64,000 nt of DNA from Selaginella moellendorffii (Eukaryota; Plantae; Lycopodiophyta): assembly GCF_000143415.4 (NCBI RefSeq), contig NW_003314394.1, forward strand, positions 37,694 to 101,693. The letters run 5' to 3'. A model generated the notes under the pieces. It saw only the letters and a list, made by a program, of their open reading frames with translations. It did no database searches and was not told the DNA's origin. Below, piece by piece: positions 21,600-38,070 of this stretch. The position numbers and the translations under genes are program-made. The stretch's first letter is position 1; every line of letters begins with the position of its first letter.

Positions 21600-23160
21600 A
21601 AAAGCGAAGAAGGCCAAGATTATCTGGTCGAAAAAAGATATGATGTTTGCTGTTGCTGCAGTGCAGAGTGGGAAAATGTCTCAACACCAGGCTGCAAAAA
21701 TCTTTGATATTGGCAGAACAAGTTTACAGAATTGGTCAGAGGGACGAACTGTGATCAGGAGAAAAGGACCTGAATATCATCTTAGTAAGCAACTAGAGCA
21801 GAAGTTTGCAGACTGGTCATTCACAAGACAACAGGCTGGACACCCTGTGACAAAACAAATCCTGGTTAACAAGGCAGGAGAATCACAGACATGGTCGGCT
21901 TACCTTTTGAAAACGAACTGTCTGGCTCCTCGTGGTGGTCACGATTCTGAAGGCGTCATCCAGAACTGTCGCTGAAGTCATCATAGGCACTCAGCAGATC
22001 CCACACTCATTGTTTCAGTCCCGAAGGTTCTACAAAATCCTCCTCAAAGGATACACTCCTGATTGATGGATGAGACCAGACTTTCAGTTAGCAGAGGCGG
22101 GGGCCTTCAGGTAATTTCTCGATGAGAAAGCAGGGAGGTTGTCGAAATTGTGCCCGCCTTAAAATAATGGTTGACCATCGTCGTTGCTGTGAGCGCTGTT
22201 GGTCAGTCGATCCCAAACTATTACATCTTCAAAGGAGCTCGGTACTCCATCAACTGGATTCCCAATTGCAACTCTCAGGCAGCTTTTGCAATGTCAAAGA
22301 AAGCTTGAATGAAAAATGCTCTCTTTGTCGACTGAATTGATCACTTTTGCCATTCGAAGTCCTTGGAAGAGTAAACAAGAAAAACCCGGATCATGCTCTT
22401 GTGGGATGACATGGATCTCACCTGACTTCTGAGGCAATAATAAAAGCATGGGAGGGCATGACGCCCATCCCTCCGCATACTAGCCACAACCCTCAGCCGT
22501 TCGATGTCTCCATCTCCAGTGATTCTCCACACCGAGTGAGTGAGATGGATGGTGGGAAACAATCAACATGAACTTATGAAGCATGAACTTGGTGGCATGG
22601 CATCCAGAGCTATTGGTCAAGCTCTTACTCTTTAAACATCATTACTTGATTCAAAGCAATTAGAATTTGCCGTTCGACTAAACGAAGATGGAGAAGGAGG
22701 TCAAAGTGCACCAGCACAATCCAGAACTTGCACTTGTTCTGCAACCGGACACACAGCAAAGTTCAGCAAAGAGGAAGCACAAAACCATAAAGAACGCTCA
22801 CCTGAAGCTGCACCATTCTACTATCCAAGAGTTGTTGCAATGAATAATCTAGTGATCCAGGCAGAGGTAGATGCTCTACTCCTCGTCTAAGTGACCACAA
22901 ATACACAATAAAAAAGAGTGAGGGCAAAGACTCTGAAAGCAACTCCTAGCTACAACATTTATGAAACAACTTACCTCACGGAGAAAGCTGCACAGGAGGC
23001 AGCATTTGTAGAGATTGGAAGAGTCGAAGGGAATGTGGAAAGCCAAACTGCCAAAGTTGGAGTAGCAAGGGTGACGAAAGAAGAGGCAGCCAAGTGTAGG
23101 GCTGCCAAGGAACTGGAGAAAGCTACACAACTACCACCTGCAAGAAGGAAATGACAGGAA
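21600..23160 (+). mobile_element. pogo/Fot1-like (Tc1/mariner superfamily) transposase pseudogene
   Basis: HTH-psq-like AVAAVQSGKMSQHQAAKIFDIGRTSL, CENP-B-type HTH LSKQLEQKFADW...AGHPVTK, and DDE-domain motifs MDET (~22066), SIPNYYIFKG (~22206) and PPHTSHNPQPFDVS (~22470). Frameshifted; termini not resolved. Confidence 0.85.
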
Positions 23161-25245: not shown

Positions 25246-26389
25246 GCCTCTACTGGTGATAAGTTATAATTTTCAAGATGAAGGGACAGTCTAACTACTT
25301 AGAATCTCTGTTTAGGTGGTAATATCGGTGAAAGTGATGGTGACGGTAGTGCTTAAGTAAAATGAAGAACAGAATCAGTACCTGAATGTGCTGAAGAAGA
25401 TGGTGGTGCGCTGATAACAGTATTGATGGTGACAACTTGTGATGGAGGCGGTCTCCGTAAATAGGGAAGCTAATATTATGTAACCGTCTCAGTCGTCATT
25501 ATTTGTACACGGTTAATCTCAATCAGACATGGGATGATTACATGTCAACTGAGGTAAAAGTGACATGGACTGATGATTAGGCAGATTGAAATATGCACAT
25601 GATGAGTTTTTTTATTTTTGGAGGTTTTTGTTTTTACAACTCAAAAAATTGGTGGCAATTTGTTTTATTAAAAAAAATGATATGATATCACATAATATAT
25701 TTTTAACTACGTGTTAAAATATGTTTTAAGATGTGATCTCAACTTAGTAAAATTTATTAAAACCATTGATTTTATCGTTATACTAACTATATAATAAAGC
25801 ACAAAACGTAGTGATAAGGCCCTACATTAGGGATCAAATCAGATTTGTCTAAGTCAAACATCAATTGCCCCTTGTCGAGTAGCTCGACATACGCACAGTA
25901 CTAGTCTTCAATTCGTGTTGTATACCTCACCGTTGCGAGCAGACGAGCAGTGGGGTCTCATGATCACGACCTGACTGATGAGATTTCCCATTCTCATCAC
26001 GAGCTCCTTGGTTCTCATCGTCACTTCCCATTGTCACGACCTGACTTATGTGGCAATTTCTGGTATAAGATCTGCGTGAAGTTGCCATGTCTTGTGTTGG
26101 ATGACTAAAACCAATTATTTTATTGTTCTACTAAAAATTACAAACTCTTGTAAAATGGTAGGAAAATGTTATCACGTCCCTTTCTAGAACACGGCAAACA
26201 AACATACAGTAGTATCTCCTTATCTTCTGGAACCAAAGATTTCACATTTGTCTAAGTCAAACATCAACTGTTGCAATTGCTGCTTGTCTAGTGGATAGTA
26301 TTCACGTGAATGCGCGTTGAATACTCTCACCGTTTCGACTTAAAAGCTGGGATCGCAAGCAGAGGAGCAGTGTGTGTTTTGCATTCAGT

Positions 26390-27325
26390 ATGGGGTCAGG
26401 TCATTCTCACGTCCTTACTGATGATGATCAAGCCAATCTCGATCAAGCCAAGTTCATGTTGCAGGTTCTCCGGAACATCCCAGGCCTCAGCGTGCTAGAT
26501 GTCTGGATTCACTACCTCACCCTCGTCGACATGGCCGAGCTGCTACGCACTCGCGAGAGGCAAGGGCGCCGTGTCTTAGACGTGCTCTGCAGGGGCGTCA
26601 CGGACTCCGTCTCCGTCATCGGCGCAAGCTCAACGCTGAGGAACCACCTGGGAAAGATAACGCAGAAAGCCGCGGCTGTCCCCGACGTCGGGGCCTTCAA
26701 CGACACGGACAAGTCGAGGCTGGAGAAGGCCATGGAGGAAGCCCAAGAGGATACGTCCCGCGCGATACGCCATGGAAACTTCAAATGCTGCGCCGAGCAT
26801 GCCGTGTTTGAGAAGCTGGACAGGATGGGCAAGCAGGCCAACTACACGTACGCTGTGCAGAAGGTCCCGCTGAACTTCCCTGAGAACCGCGAGCTGGAGA
26901 AGCTGCCTTCGGGAGTTGTCAGGATTGTACCTCGCTGCGCCAACTGCAAGATCGCCGGTGGTGCCGCCAGTGGCTCCGGACCGTTTCCACGAACTCCACG
27001 TCTGGGTGCGGTAGTCACCGATCACCCCAACCTAGATGGACTGGTTGTCCCCGTTATGTCGCCTGCTGTCTTGTACTACATCAGGTGAGATAACGATGTT
27101 GAGGATTTCGTCAAGATTGTTTTGATGTGAGTGCATGCATGCAGGGTTGAACTTAGAGGTGTCAACGGAGCCACTCGTCAGGCTATCGTGCAGCGCTTCC
27201 CGAATGTCCGTGTGAGGCGAACCGACCCGCCCATCCCGCTGGCGGCTGAAAGGATCTTCCCACTCATGGATGATAACGATGATGACCTGGAAACCATGTT
27301 CGTCCGTCGGCACGACGAGCTCTGA
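26390..27325 (+). CDS. Putative zinc-dependent nucleic-acid deaminase (YwqJ/toxin-deaminase-like), two exons 26390-27084 and 27145-27325, 291 aa
   Basis: ATG at 26390 (MGSGHS). CAE at 26789-26797 and PRCANC at 26930-26947 fit the [H/C]xE...CxxC deaminase signature. A 60-nt phase-2 intron (AG|GTGAGA at 27085 ... TGCAG| at 27144) joins in frame to RVELRG...RRHDEL*. No disablements. Confidence 0.7.
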
Positions 27326-27479
27326 TTGATGAATCAGTCAATGCTAATAATCAAGTAAAAACAAATAAAGGCCAACAAGTTTGTCATTATTGTTAATCGC
27401 ATTTTACAGACAAAGTTAAACACGCTGTTCAAGAATCAAGAAAATATTAATCAATCACAATGGTGAGGCATTCTCTCGT

Positions 27480-30055: not shown

Positions 30056-33000
30056 TCACTCCAGTACCTCAGGCTGTAAAATACACTCAACATGTTCATG
30101 CCCTAAAAGAGTCTGGAGTCCATTGAAAGATTTGTTGCTTTTTGAGCAACATTGTAATGGGCTTGCTGATCTTAGCAAAGTCCTTTATGAATCTACGATG
30201 GTAGTTCATCTTGCCCATGAAGCTGGGTACTCCAGATACATCATTGGGTGGCTTCATATTGACAATGGTTTCTGTCTTGGCTTTATCGATCAGGATGCCT
30301 TGTTTGCACACGACATGACCAAGTAGGATACCTGATAGGGCAAAGAACACACACTTCTCAGGGTTGAGAAGAATGTTGTTTTGCTGGCATTTGTCAAAGC
30401 ATTTCTAGAGGTGCTCCAGGTGATTAGCTTGAGTACCAAAGATGCTAAAATCGTCCATAAAGACACACATGAAATTGGTGAGGTACTCTTGAAAAGTTTC
30501 AATAATAATTCACTGAAACGTGAAGGGAGCATTTGTTAGGCCGAAGGGCATCTGTTGATAAGCAAAAGCTCCCCATGGGCTGATAAAAGCCGTTTTGTGA
30601 GTATCCTTAGGTGCAATATGCACCTGGTTATAGCCACTAAAGCCATCAAGAAACAAATACATTTCATGGCTGGCTACTAAATTTAGTATCTCATCAGTAA
30701 AGGGGATCAGGAATGTGTCTTTTACTGTATTGTCATTCAACTTTTTATAGTTCACACAAATGCAAAGTTTCTGATTTTTCTTGGGAACAATGACGAGTGG
30801 CGAAAGCCATTGGGCATTTTGTATAGGAAAAATGATGCCAACATGTAAAAGCTTGTCAAGCTCCACCTTGACTTTCTCTTGGAAAGTCGGATTCATGCGG
30901 TAAGGCATTTGTTTACGTGGAATAGCTCTGGGTATGAGTTCGATGCGATGCATGCAAAGCTCTGGAGGTATGCCTTTGAGATCCAAGTGCAATCTGCTGG
31001 CTGCCCCAAGTGAGCAATATCAGCTGATGAAAGCCAAGTTTGGCCAAGGAGAATCTCATAAAAGCCTTCACCTTGTGGCATTTTGAGAACTATAAAGTTC
31101 AGTTTGTACTTGTTGGCTTTGATTTGGATGGTTATCTGACAGACTATGCCAATCGGTCGGACCTCTCGTTGATCAGCCATTATCAAGTTAAATGGGGTTG
31201 GTTCTATCGGCCCAAGACCTAAGGCCTTGAACGTGCCATATTCCATGATATTTACACCAGATCCTCCGTCTATGAGTGCATTATGGATTTTGTTTTTGCC
31301 TATGGCAATTGTGATGCAAGGGGTATTGCCATCATAGTCAACAGGCTGAATTCCTGCGGCATAAACGGGACCTGGGGGTTGAATTGTCGGAGGATGTACC
31401 GCCTTGAGAATTGGTCGAGCAAGATATGGTGCTATTTGCAATATCTGCTGGAGGGATAGAGTAATTCCCTGTTGAAGTATGTGATCAACAAGAACAGAAT
31501 GTTCTTGCTGAGTGAATGGCTTGAGTGGTTCCTCAGCTGCCGGATCAGGTAAGCGATCCGCATCGGCAGGTAACTCAGGTGGCAGTTCCTGAAGATCTTT
31601 GCGGATCTGGTCTGCAACAGCCTTGGCTTTTTGCCATTCTGAGGGGCTGATTTCCTCTACGTTGTCCAGATTCTGATCTGATTGAACCTGTTTTGCTCGA
31701 GCTCGTGTGACGGCTCGGACAGCAGGTTGGGCAGTCGGCTGTTTGTCATAGTATTCTGCTACATCAACAGCTCGAGTTGCCGGTTGTGCTGGTCGAGGTC
31801 CCGGATTAGGAGGGGGTCCTTGATTTTGATAAGGTGGTCTCTGTCCTGCTGGGGGATGATTATCCCTGAGAGGCAGAAGGCTGCTGATTCTGATATCGGT
31901 TATCTCGTGGTATGTATCCACGGTTTTGAGGATAACCCGGATTGTAGTAACCCGAACCGTGATACGACTGATTTTGATAACCTTGGTTGGGATTTCCTTG
32001 GTTGGATGGTCCCTGTTGGGGTATCCCTGATCAACATAGCCTTGATTGGGCACAATTGTAATTGGGCCGACGCCAATTAACATTTTGGCGTTGATCATTG
32101 CGAGGTGAACCTCTGTTGTTCTTCCCTCGAGGGTTTTGACGATCATTCCGGAATGGTCCGACGACTTGCTGAACATCAGCATATTGTCTTCGTCGACATT
32201 GTTTGGCTGTATGGCCTTCAATATCGCAGATTTCACATCTAGGCATTTGGAAGCGACATTCCGCATTGGTGTGATCCTCATTTCTACATCGGGTGCACCA
32301 CACGCCGGGCTTTTTTCAGTCAATTTCTTAAGATAGACCTTGGGTCTCTTTTTTGAGTGAAAACGCTTTGAATGCGGTGATGATATCCTCATCGTGCTTT
32401 CCTGATCAAAGTACCGAGCTTTACCTTTGAGTGTATAAGGGAAAAGAGCTAGGTGATCTGCTTGTTAAACTTGAAGTGCATTCTTGAATCGGCGGATATG
32501 CAACTCGGGGTCCTCATGTTTGAGACCACTGAGTTCCGGGTAAGAAACTGTGAGACCATAGAGCATGGATGGGAAAGCCATCGGGTTGATGCTCTGGTAT
32601 GTCTTGAGGGGTTCTTGCCTTTCAGCCTCCCTTGGCGTTCGAGCTCAACTTGACGTCGAAGCTCGTCCTTCTTAATCTGTTCGAGGTATTCGTTTCTGAG
32701 CTTTCTGTTCTTCAAGCAATCACCGATTGATGCGGTCAATGAATTCGTCTGAAGTCTGAATTCGGCTTGCTAGGACTGCTAGGCGGTGGTGATCCTGTAG
32801 GGTTGGATCCAAACAAAGATGTTTGTCTAGACGTGTAAGTGTATTCGGGAAGTGCTTCCCTAGAGACTTCCTGCTTAGGTGGAGGAGTAGTAGCCCGATC
32901 CTGAGCAGGGGGTGTTGTCTCCAACGGTTTTGATTGAGTGTCAGAGTGCAGGAGTGTCCTTTCCAAGACAGTCTCTTGCGTCTGTTTGTCTCGGTTCTTT

Positions 33001-35639: not shown

Positions 35640-38070
35640 AAATCTCTCTATATGAATTCACGTTTCCAGTTTGGTCGAGCAAGTATTGGTGCTCGAATCA
35701 GATGATTCTTCAACGTATGGAATGCTGCATCACATTCGGGAGTCCAGTTGAAGGTGTGTTGTTTCTTCAGTAAGTTGGTCATCGGCTTGCTGATCCTTAC
35801 ATAGTCTTGGATGAAGCATCTATGATATCCCATTTTTCCCAAAAATCTTCTGACACTTGAGACATCCACAGGTGGTTTCATGTTGAGGATGATCTCTGTC
35901 TTGGCTTTGTCAATTAGTATCCCTTGCTTGCAGATTATATGTCTGAATAGAACTCTGGATCTGACGAAGAAGGAACATTTCTCCTTGTTTGAAGCACTTT
36001 TGTAGGCATTCCAAGTGCCTTGCTTGGTTGTTGAAAACACTGAAATCGTCCATAAAAATGCGCATGAAATCTGTTAAGTATTCCTGAAAAGTTTCGGTGA
36101 TAATCCTTTGAAAGGTGAACAGAGTGTTGGTGAGGCCGAATGGCATGCGAAGATAAACATACGCTCCCCACAGGCTAATGAAAGCTGTTTTATGTTAATC
36201 TTCTTGTGCAATGTGCACTTAGTTGTAGCCGCTAAATCCATCAAGAAAAGAGTACATTTTGTGTCCAGCCACCGAATCTAGTATCTCGTCGGTAAACGGG
36301 ATTGGAAATGTGTCTATAGTTGTGCTCTCATTCAGCTTTTTGTAATTGACGCATATGCATAGTTTCCCATTCTTCTTTGGTACTATCACCAGGGGTGATA
36401 GCCACCGAGCGTTTTGTATTGGATGGATGAATTAAGCTTCAAGGAGCTTATCTAGTTCGGCTTTAACTTTCTCCTGAAAGTTCGGATTCATCTGATAGGC
36501 TCTCTGTTTCTTGGGTGTTGCTCCTGGGATGAGCTGAATGTGGTGTGTATAGAGGTCTGGGGGTATGCCCCGTAAGTCTTTGTAGGACCAGGTGAACACA
36601 TCTTGGTTGAGTCATAAAAGCTCAATGCCTCGTTGTCTGAACTCAGGATCTAATTCCTGAGCTATTTGAAGATTTCTGGGTTCCTCGATGGATCTGATAT
36701 TCATGGTGTCAAGGTCTTCATTGACTTTGATCTTGTTTTGTAAAGCATCACCTTGTCTAACCAGTGCTGGAGTTTCATCCAGGTTCATTGTGTGCGCTAC
36801 TGGCTGTAGTGCTTCGGGTGTTTGATATCAGGAGGCTCACGTTAGGCAACCTTTGGTTGTGATTGAGTAGTGATTTCGGGCTGTTTTCACCTTGCTTGAG
36901 GTAGAATTCGTCGTAAGTCAACCTGTGTGATTGGCTGTAGTTCCGGATAAGCTTGGAGAAGTTGTTGTTCTTGTACATCATCAAAGCCTTCATGCCAATC
37001 ATAAGGTTTGATGTGAGTAGGCTTGTTGCATTGAAGCACTTGTTTTGTGCGTGTTGTTGATAACTGAGGGGCATCAGGGTGTTGTTGCTCCCCCAAAAAT
37101 GTAAAATATCAGCATTGCGAAGCCATGTTCGGCCTAGAAGGACGTCATATGCTCCCTCTGCGTCCGTCATTTTTAAGATGATGAAGTTCAGCCTATACTT
37201 ATTTGCCTTGACTCGTATGGGGACATTCTGGATGATTCCGAATGGTCAGACCTGTCGTTGGTCAGCCATGATGACGTTGAATGGGGCTGGCTCACATGGT
37301 CCTGCTCCCAGAGCTTTGAAAGTTTTGTATTCCATGATATTAACGCCTGAACCACCATCGAGTACGGTGTCAATGATCTTGTTTTTGCCGATGGTAATGT
37401 TAATGCATGGAGAATCTCCATCATAGTCACTGGGTTGTATTTTGGCTTGGAGTACCTGAACTTTCGGCTGGGTATTCCGAGGTTTTGTCTGTGACTGTGT
37501 GGCATTTAAGATTTGCAATGTTATTTCTTTCCACTTCGGGATTGTTTTCATCGTCGGACTCAGGTTTGGCTTGCCGAGCGCGAGCTCAGGTAATTGCTCG
37601 AACGACTGGTTGCTGTTCGTAGTATTCTGTTTGATCACTTGCTGGTGGTTCGACAACCTCAACCAACCGAGTTGTTGGTTACTCAGGTAATTGCTCGAAC
37701 GACTGGTTGCTGTTCGTAGTATTCTGTTTGATCACTTGCTGGTGGTTCGACAACCTCAACCGACCGAGTTGTTGGTTACTGCGGTCTAGGTGCCTGGCAA
37801 AGTATGGTGCAAGTTGGAGTATCTGTTGCAAGGTCAATGTAATTCCTTCCACTTCAGGATTGTTTTCATCGTCAGACTCAGGTTTGGCTTGCCGAGCGCG
37901 AGCTCGGGTAATAGCTCAAACGACTGGTTGCTGTTCGTAGTATTCTGTTTGATCACTTGCTGGTGGTTCGACAACCTCAACCGACCGAGTTGTTGGTTAC
38001 TGCGGTCTAGGTGCCTATGCCAGAGGTTGATCTCAGGTTTGATATTGCATTCTCTACCCAAGTGGTCCCT
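35640..38070 (-). mobile_element. Second, related gypsy copy (protease-RT region), degenerate
   Basis: VLDGGSGVNIMEYKTFKALG, YDVLLGRTWL, MPFGLTNTLFTFQ, FMDDFSVF, FLGKMGYHR; clearly paralogous to 30060-31400. Confidence 0.9.
37530..38016. repeat. Three near-identical ~100-165 bp duplications in the gag-protease linker
   Basis: acgactggttgctgttcgtagtattctgtttgatcacttgctggtggttcgacaacctcaacc recurs at ~37602, ~37699 and ~37920. Confidence 0.9.

Follow-up and report, generated by a model that had tools for sequence, protein, structure and literature searches.

What does the intact gene at positions 26390–27325 of a 64,000-nt stretch of the Selaginella moellendorffii genome (contig NW_003314394.1; the whole stretch is called the window below, and all coordinates are window positions) encode, and where did it come from? 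A preliminary description of the window had proposed a zinc-dependent deaminase recalling the YwqJ-like toxins of bacteria, possibly acquired by horizontal transfer. From predicted structures and residue conservation, we estimate at roughly 75% the probability that the product is a zinc-dependent hydrolytic deaminase, standing alone and belonging to a so far unnamed clade with the cytidine-deaminase fold, found only in lycophytes and ferns. It is probably a base-deaminating enzyme of a new kind that was inherited vertically.

The gene is intact, transcribed and spliced. Its two coding segments lie on the forward strand (26390–27084 and 27145–27325), the reading frame is kept across the splice, and the spliced coding sequence of 876 nt translates into 291 aa that are identical throughout to the NCBI hypothetical protein SELMODRAFT_430527 of S. 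moellendorffii (291 aa; P0001 below). Exon 1 (26363–27084), from whose start the transcript contigs begin at 26363 or 26377, contains the ATG at 26390 and codes for residues 1–231 plus two nucleotides of the codon for R232; exon 2 (27145–27362) codes for residues 232–291, with the stop codon ending at 27325 and a short 3′ untranslated region seen up to 27362, just past which an AATAAA lies at 27364–27369. The intervening GT..AG intron (27085–27144; guanine plus cytosine (GC) content 0.417) is skipped in Logan contigs from runs X1 and X3, which come from two studies and cover 26363/26377 to 27362 with 0 mismatches and exactly 60 nt removed. The type of these two runs is only guessed as RNA, and the contigs are taken as complementary DNA because they are intron-less, unless a processed DNA copy exists. 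The raw RNA-seq runs X23 and X24 gave 0 reads at the locus in the 12% sampled, a result that the tool itself does not count as a test. The two-exon structure, the splice, the quoted peptides and the 47-residue spacing given in the preliminary description were all found in place.

An exhaustive HMMER search of 1.84 billion protein cluster representatives (E ≤ 0.001) matched eight proteins, namely P0001 itself and seven other cluster representatives. The closest, P0002 (48% identity), is encoded on an intron-less 1189-nt Logan contig, and P0006 comes from another transcript-like Logan contig. P0003 and P0004 are two Selaginella paralog clusters, which cover SELMODRAFT_448059, 442274 and 445532 and LOC9656643, 9662428, 112351202 and 112351222. 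The lycophyte Diphasiastrum complanatum contributes P0005 and P0014, and the fern Adiantum contributes P0007 and P0008, plus P0015 from A. nelumboides. All named members are thus from lycophytes or ferns, all are annotated as hypothetical or uncharacterized, and paralogs within one genome share only 38–40% identity. Using the exon-1 protein, P0003 or the family alignment as the query, word-index protein searches added no members to the exhaustive HMMER set, and the exon-1 query matched only itself.

The residues expected of a zinc deaminase stand out in this small family. Among the five cysteines of P0001, only C134, C183 and C186 are conserved (10 of 10, 10 of 10 and 11 of 11 members, respectively), and C67 and C133 vary; E136, located 47 residues ahead of C183, is kept in all ten members that cover the site. 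The helix-2 motif reads CAE in nine of ten members and CSE in the other. Regarding the second motif, the preliminary description had pointed to PxCxxC; its CxxC part is invariant, whereas the Pro occurs in the window copy only (P, E, K, H or R in relatives), the family motif being R-C-x-N-C with N185 kept in 11 of 11 members. C134-A135-E136 (26789–26797), at the N-end of helix 135–145, would provide one zinc ligand and the catalytic Glu, and R182-C183-A-N185-C186 (26933–26947), at the N-end of helix 184–189, two further predicted zinc ligands. The other invariant or nearly invariant positions are E141, K142, R145, Y154, Q157, R182 and N185, together with L205-G206, V209-T210-D211 and V220-P221.

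The predicted fold places these residues where a deaminase would have them. An AlphaFold2 model of P0001, built on an 11-sequence alignment, reached a predicted local distance difference test score (pLDDT) of 69.6 and a predicted template modelling score (pTM) of 0.74, and an AlphaFold model of the divergent Diphasiastrum protein P0014 (pLDDT 67) has the same motif arrangement. In both models, CxE and CxxC lie at the N-ends of consecutive helices with one strand between them, downstream of a hairpin, and [H/C]xE and CxxC at these helix starts are the canonical placement in the deaminase fold. The hairpin-like segment recognised in the preliminary description, VLDVLCRGVTDSVSVIGAS (residues 62–80), is indeed a predicted beta-hairpin with strands at residues 65–70 and 75–79 (DSSP of the model); residues 65–79 (26582–26626) would form the first two strands of the deaminase core. 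Next comes an insert separating strand 2 from helix 2 (the Str-2/Hel-2 insert; residues 81–133, 26630–26788) that is helical and partly disordered in the models and varies in length across the family. Core strand 3 is predicted at residues 152–158 (YTYAVQK; 26843–26863), with Y154 and Q157 invariant, and both models place a second insert at residues 159–179, between this strand and CxxC. After helix 184–189, the P0001 model continues with a strand at 206–208, a conserved loop with a V-P bridge and a helix at 225–236. Residues 205–222 (LGAVVTD...LVVPV; 27002–27055) would accordingly be made up of strand 4, the invariant T-D, the loop and the V-P bridge, with G206, V209, T210, D211, V220 and P221 all invariant. 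Strand 5, which ends in a Glu in CDD/CDA and blasticidin-S deaminases, is represented in the models by a one-residue bridge at V-P 219–221, where no conserved Glu was seen.

When the P0001 model was compared with 48,161 chains using VIA, the blasticidin-S deaminase 3oj6 ranked first (Z 6.5, 109 residues, 3.4 Å), followed by the cytidine deaminases 3b8f (Z 5.7) and 3dmo (Z 5.0); ADAT2/3, PPR-DYW, guanine deaminase, the T6S toxin SsdA (9c63) and TadA appeared lower, mixed with helical noise. The P0014 model matched 3oj6 at Z 8.4 (108 residues, 2.9 Å, 19% identity) and reached Z 7.6 with 3b8f; of its top 33 matches, about 30 were chains of the deaminase superfamily, including SsdA, TadA, DddA and DddB. 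Ranks 1–3 were deaminases for both models. Foldseek against the PDB gave no significant match (best E 0.1), with cytidine deaminases holding most of the top ranks; realignment of its candidates with VIA yielded 2z3j at Z 6.8 (106 of 125 residues, 2.9 Å) and 38 chains at Z ≥ 5, among which every chain displayed was a deaminase. The ESM Atlas, using its own model as well as a shape search with the AlphaFold model, returned cytidine-deaminase, DYW and toxin-deaminase clusters. Overall, the zinc-deaminase call of the preliminary description gained support from the deaminase fold predicted in two models, which was their best match, and from the invariance of C134, E136, C183 and C186 in the members covering these sites.

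Several points weigh against this assignment. No sequence method, single or profile, connects these proteins with a deaminase family: when P0001 and all family members were scanned with Pfam, NCBIfam and PADLOC, no deaminase family came up at E ≤ 10 and only chance-level matches did (e.g., CoA pyrophosphatase, E 0.06), and searches of the PDB by sequence, both single (phmmer) and profile (hmmsearch), likewise gave chance matches only, with no deaminase at E ≤ 10. The ribose-binding N-x-E element of CDA and the PCxxCR motif are missing from the family. The Z scores of 6.5–8.4 fall within the range that the VIA tool calls common for unmatched models, and the two models are of middling confidence (pLDDT 67–70), draw on only 11 sequences and share one alignment. 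The co-location of C134, C183, C186 and E136 is read from the predicted topology. Because single Z scores of this size are common, the case for the fold rests on the uniformity of the match lists, the near-complete coverage of small targets, the agreement of two family members and the coincidence with the conserved motif. The same evidence bears on whether the protein might instead be a catalytically dead deaminase-fold module with a binding or regulatory function, or an unrelated protein with a chance motif. Inactive deaminase domains are common in eukaryotes (PMC3239186) and model confidence is modest, but all four catalytic and zinc-binding residues are invariant in both deep clades of the family and the other cysteines are not, whereas inactive paralogs usually lose the catalytic set, and two family members gave uniform deaminase match lists, which speaks against a chance match. 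We regard this alternative as improbable.

If the deaminase assignment is correct, C134, C183 and C186 would hold one zinc ion, as the fold suggests, and E136 would shuttle a proton to the zinc-bound water, which, once activated, would displace the exocyclic amino group from a cytosine-type base. The two inserts and the invariant T210-D211 would shape the pocket and probably select the substrate.

The position of the family within the superfamily was assessed by comparing its features with the clade-defining ones tabulated by Iyer et al. 2011 (Table 1; PMC3239186). We leave it as a clade with no assigned place, probably in the C-terminal-hairpin division, whose enzymes matched the P0001 model at Z 5.5–6.8, compared with 3.9–4.9 for those of the Helix-4 division. 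The best structural matches are members of the CDD/CDA and blasticidin-S deaminase group (PF00383; 3oj6, 2z3j and 3b8f), at Z 6.5–8.4 over 106–110 residues and 2.9–4.0 Å, which is nearly the whole target. The family shares with this group C-A-E on helix 2, CxxC on helix 3 and three Cys zinc ligands (predicted in the family). It differs in having R-C-x-N-C with no following Arg instead of PCxxCR, in an insert of about 50 residues that replaces the N-x-E element found after strand 2 in CDD/CDA, and in carrying, in addition, the second insert before CxxC, an extra helix at the N-terminus and about 70 further residues at the C-terminus; there is also no match to the group at the sequence level.

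These likenesses make it possible, although we do not favour it, that the protein acts on a small molecule (a free nucleoside, a nucleotide or a secondary metabolite), as blasticidin-S deaminase and tetrameric CDA do. Blasticidin-S deaminases and homotetrameric cytidine deaminases are its best structural matches, CAE is the CDD/CDA form of the motif, and no attached nucleic-acid-binding domain was detected in the family scans. However, these enzymes represent the minimal fold, so divergent members of the superfamily tend to match them first, and two of their hallmarks, PCxxCR and the N-x-E after strand 2, are missing here. Iyer et al. 2011 (PMC3239186), moreover, link large pocket inserts and fast divergence of paralogs, both seen in this family, to clades of the nucleic-acid and toxin types. 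We judge a base in a nucleic acid or linked to a nucleotide somewhat more likely as the substrate than a free nucleoside, a leaning that is based on the pocket inserts, the fast divergence of paralogs (38–40% identity) and the small lineage-specific expansion, and that runs contrary to the closest structures being small-molecule enzymes. The protein itself is probably cytosolic or nuclear because it contains no signal or transit peptide.

Among plant nucleic-acid deaminases, the DYW domain (PF14432; 7o4f and 9kfx) is the obvious comparison; like the window family it is of the C-terminal-hairpin type (Z 4.3–5.5) and occurs in plants, and the family also shares with DYW-like proteins an Asp terminating strand 4, along with their insert. 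In contrast, the family has CAE[H/Q] where DYW has HxEK, and it lacks the CxDCH/DYW tail, the second zinc site, the PPR tract and the organelle-targeting peptide; Pfam found no PPR, E-motif or DYW match in P0001 or the other family members. The protein is distinct from the plant DYW, TAD and CDA families, as the preliminary description had held. Activity on nucleic acids would make it a second deaminase system of this kind in plants, one that works apart from the PPR-DYW machinery; activity on a small molecule would point to an unrecognised part of the metabolism of lycophytes and ferns. Any part played in defence or editing is speculative. One bolder scenario, which we put forward tentatively and consider doubtful, is a PPR-independent cytosolic or nuclear family of nucleic-acid deaminases in seed-free vascular plants, with a role like that of AID/APOBEC, which would have arisen before the lycophyte-fern split and been lost in seed plants, and which would mutate or edit viral or transposon DNA or RNA, or edit host transcripts. 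Were this true, the compact Cys3 active site, with its two atypical inserts at the pocket, could serve as a new scaffold for base editors.

The bacterial toxin affiliation fared less well. The family resembles YwqJ-like deaminases (PF14431; PMC3239186) in that CxE is allowed in that clade and both clade inserts are present, and by language-model features the closest clusters with a Pfam name are those of YwqJ (0.85–0.88), a similarity rated as a lead only. The exons are also GC-rich. Against a recently acquired YwqJ-like polymorphic-toxin deaminase, the Gx[CH]xE signature is absent, the position two before C134 being K, Q or E and never G, and the Str-2/Hel-2 insert has no conserved His (H86 and H128 each occur in one of ten members). 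PF14431 did not match, and the protein has neither toxin delivery domains nor an immunity gene but stands alone as a plant protein whose gene contains an intron. No relative was found in bacterial or archaeal genomes, in JGI metagenomes (pattern scan and tblastn) or in plasmids (tblastn), which is weak evidence because a single narrow peptide pattern was used. The remaining objections come from the host-like composition of the intron and from the age of the family, described next, and together they leave this reading very unlikely.

The coding sequence is GC-richer than its surroundings, as had been judged by eye, with a GC content of 0.587 (0.70 at third codon positions) compared with approximately 0.41 in the 5-kb flanks and 0.428 in the window. 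The contrast is limited to the exons, and the intron is AT-rich like the host. A homolog transcript from another sample has a similar exon GC of 0.595. GC-richness was accordingly rejected as a sign of foreign origin, since it is confined to exons. In the maximum-likelihood tree (midpoint-rooted; P0007 is a fragment), the family fell into two clades with 100/100 support, each containing lycophyte and Adiantum members. The simplest reading of these sequences is a duplication before the lycophyte-euphyllophyte split, after which the copies were inherited vertically and disappeared from seed plants. The site at which two Diphasiastrum isoforms part from each other is homologous to the Selaginella intron, which, judged from the proteins, fits a shared intron. 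The taxonomic profile and the tree, with lycophyte and fern members only and a duplication older than their split, therefore did not bear out the suggested horizontal acquisition as a recent event: the AT-rich spliced intron, the exon-only GC contrast, the deep duplication and the absence of bacterial relatives in the searches all disfavour it. The gene has probably long resided in the genomes of vascular plants and was not brought in recently from bacteria.

Descent of the family from bacteria or fungi in the distant past is possible. Its nearest language-model neighbours in the ESM Atlas are clusters of 225 and 241 aa from Ascomycota and one of 168 aa from Bacteroidota, at 0.90–0.91 with 174–187 shared features. 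These clusters may be unannotated deaminase-like families related to the window family, although language-model scores serve as leads only.

A further question is whether the family has already been described. A Selaginella protein, SELMODRAFT_427619, was reported by Iyer et al. 2011 (PMC3239186) as a "strongly divergent" OTT_1508-like deaminase, and identity with it would place the present family in the existing literature. OTT_1508-like proteins (PF14441) are likewise sporadic and strongly divergent in eukaryotes, their fungal members share the helical Str-2/Hel-2 insert, and a long loop after strand 4 with a polar residue and a Pro occurs in both; P0001 additionally has G-V-V-R before CxxC and the long conserved TDH...VP loop followed by a helix. 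However, the GxxK of that clade is not conserved in the family, and its loop motif with aromatic-xx-P fits only approximately. G-V-V-R is restricted to the window copy, with K at −5 in P0002 and clade B and V, hence no basic residue, in the P0003/P0004-type paralogs, and the conserved loop T-D-[HQS]...L-x-V-P has a Leu, with no aromatic residue, three positions before the Pro. No PF14441 hidden Markov model match was obtained, and the Z scores for Helix-4-division enzymes are the lower ones, as given above. SELMODRAFT_427619 is not among the Selaginella members recovered, the word-index search having covered proteins of 186–591 aa only. Because its tag is missing there, SELMODRAFT_427619 is probably a different protein, and we consider it unlikely that the two coincide.

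The lycophyte and fern proteins can credibly be regarded as a new clade within an enzyme superfamily already known, as far as predicted structures allow. No mention of the four Selaginella locus tags was found in the searchable literature, and a literature search found no paper on such a lycophyte/fern family. An intact catalytic set has been kept across lycophytes and ferns, whose evolution spans more than 400 million years, and no seed-plant member appeared in the search of 1.84 billion proteins. Deaminase clades invisible to sequence methods have reportedly given rise to AID/APOBEC immunity, DYW editing and the DddA, SsdA and Sdd base editors.

Some family members show features of their own. 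P0001 and P0002 start with MGSGxS, an N-myristoylation-type consensus (MGxxxS), and the others start with MAS, MAG, MET or MDP; membrane tethering may therefore apply to the P0001/P0002 sub-branch only. The older gene models P0010, P0013 and P0015 have long unconserved C-terminal tails beyond the deaminase core (SELMODRAFT_442274, 419 aa; SELMODRAFT_445532, 635 aa; and the Adiantum nelumboides protein, 623 aa), which are probably annotation read-through past the conserved splice point and not true fusions.

The surroundings of the gene consist of transposon debris, in line with the earlier remark that it is intact, with a full coding sequence and spliced contigs, while its neighbours have decayed. 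Pfam detected an RVT_1 fragment at 30510–30992 and an RT_RNaseH_2 fragment at 35648–36040, both on the reverse strand, and an HTH_psq open reading frame (ORF) of 111 aa at 21640–21975 on the forward strand (E 1.6e-10), the last being probably a pogo/Tc1-type transposase remnant. Overlapping the RVT_1 fragment, a 499-aa ORF on the reverse strand (30893–32392) gave no Pfam match at E ≤ 0.01. The gene was rejected as transposon cargo, given that no terminal inverted or long direct repeats flank it. About 400 bp upstream, outside the transcript, the forward strand carries a degenerate partial duplicate of the promoter and 5′ end of the gene (25839–26050), in which 25839–25867 corresponds to 26242–26270 at 93% and both 25956–25980 and 26026–26050 are similar to 26399–26423. 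A short ORF in this region (25950–26108) starts with MGSHDHDLTDE, resembling MGSGHSHVLTDDD of the gene.
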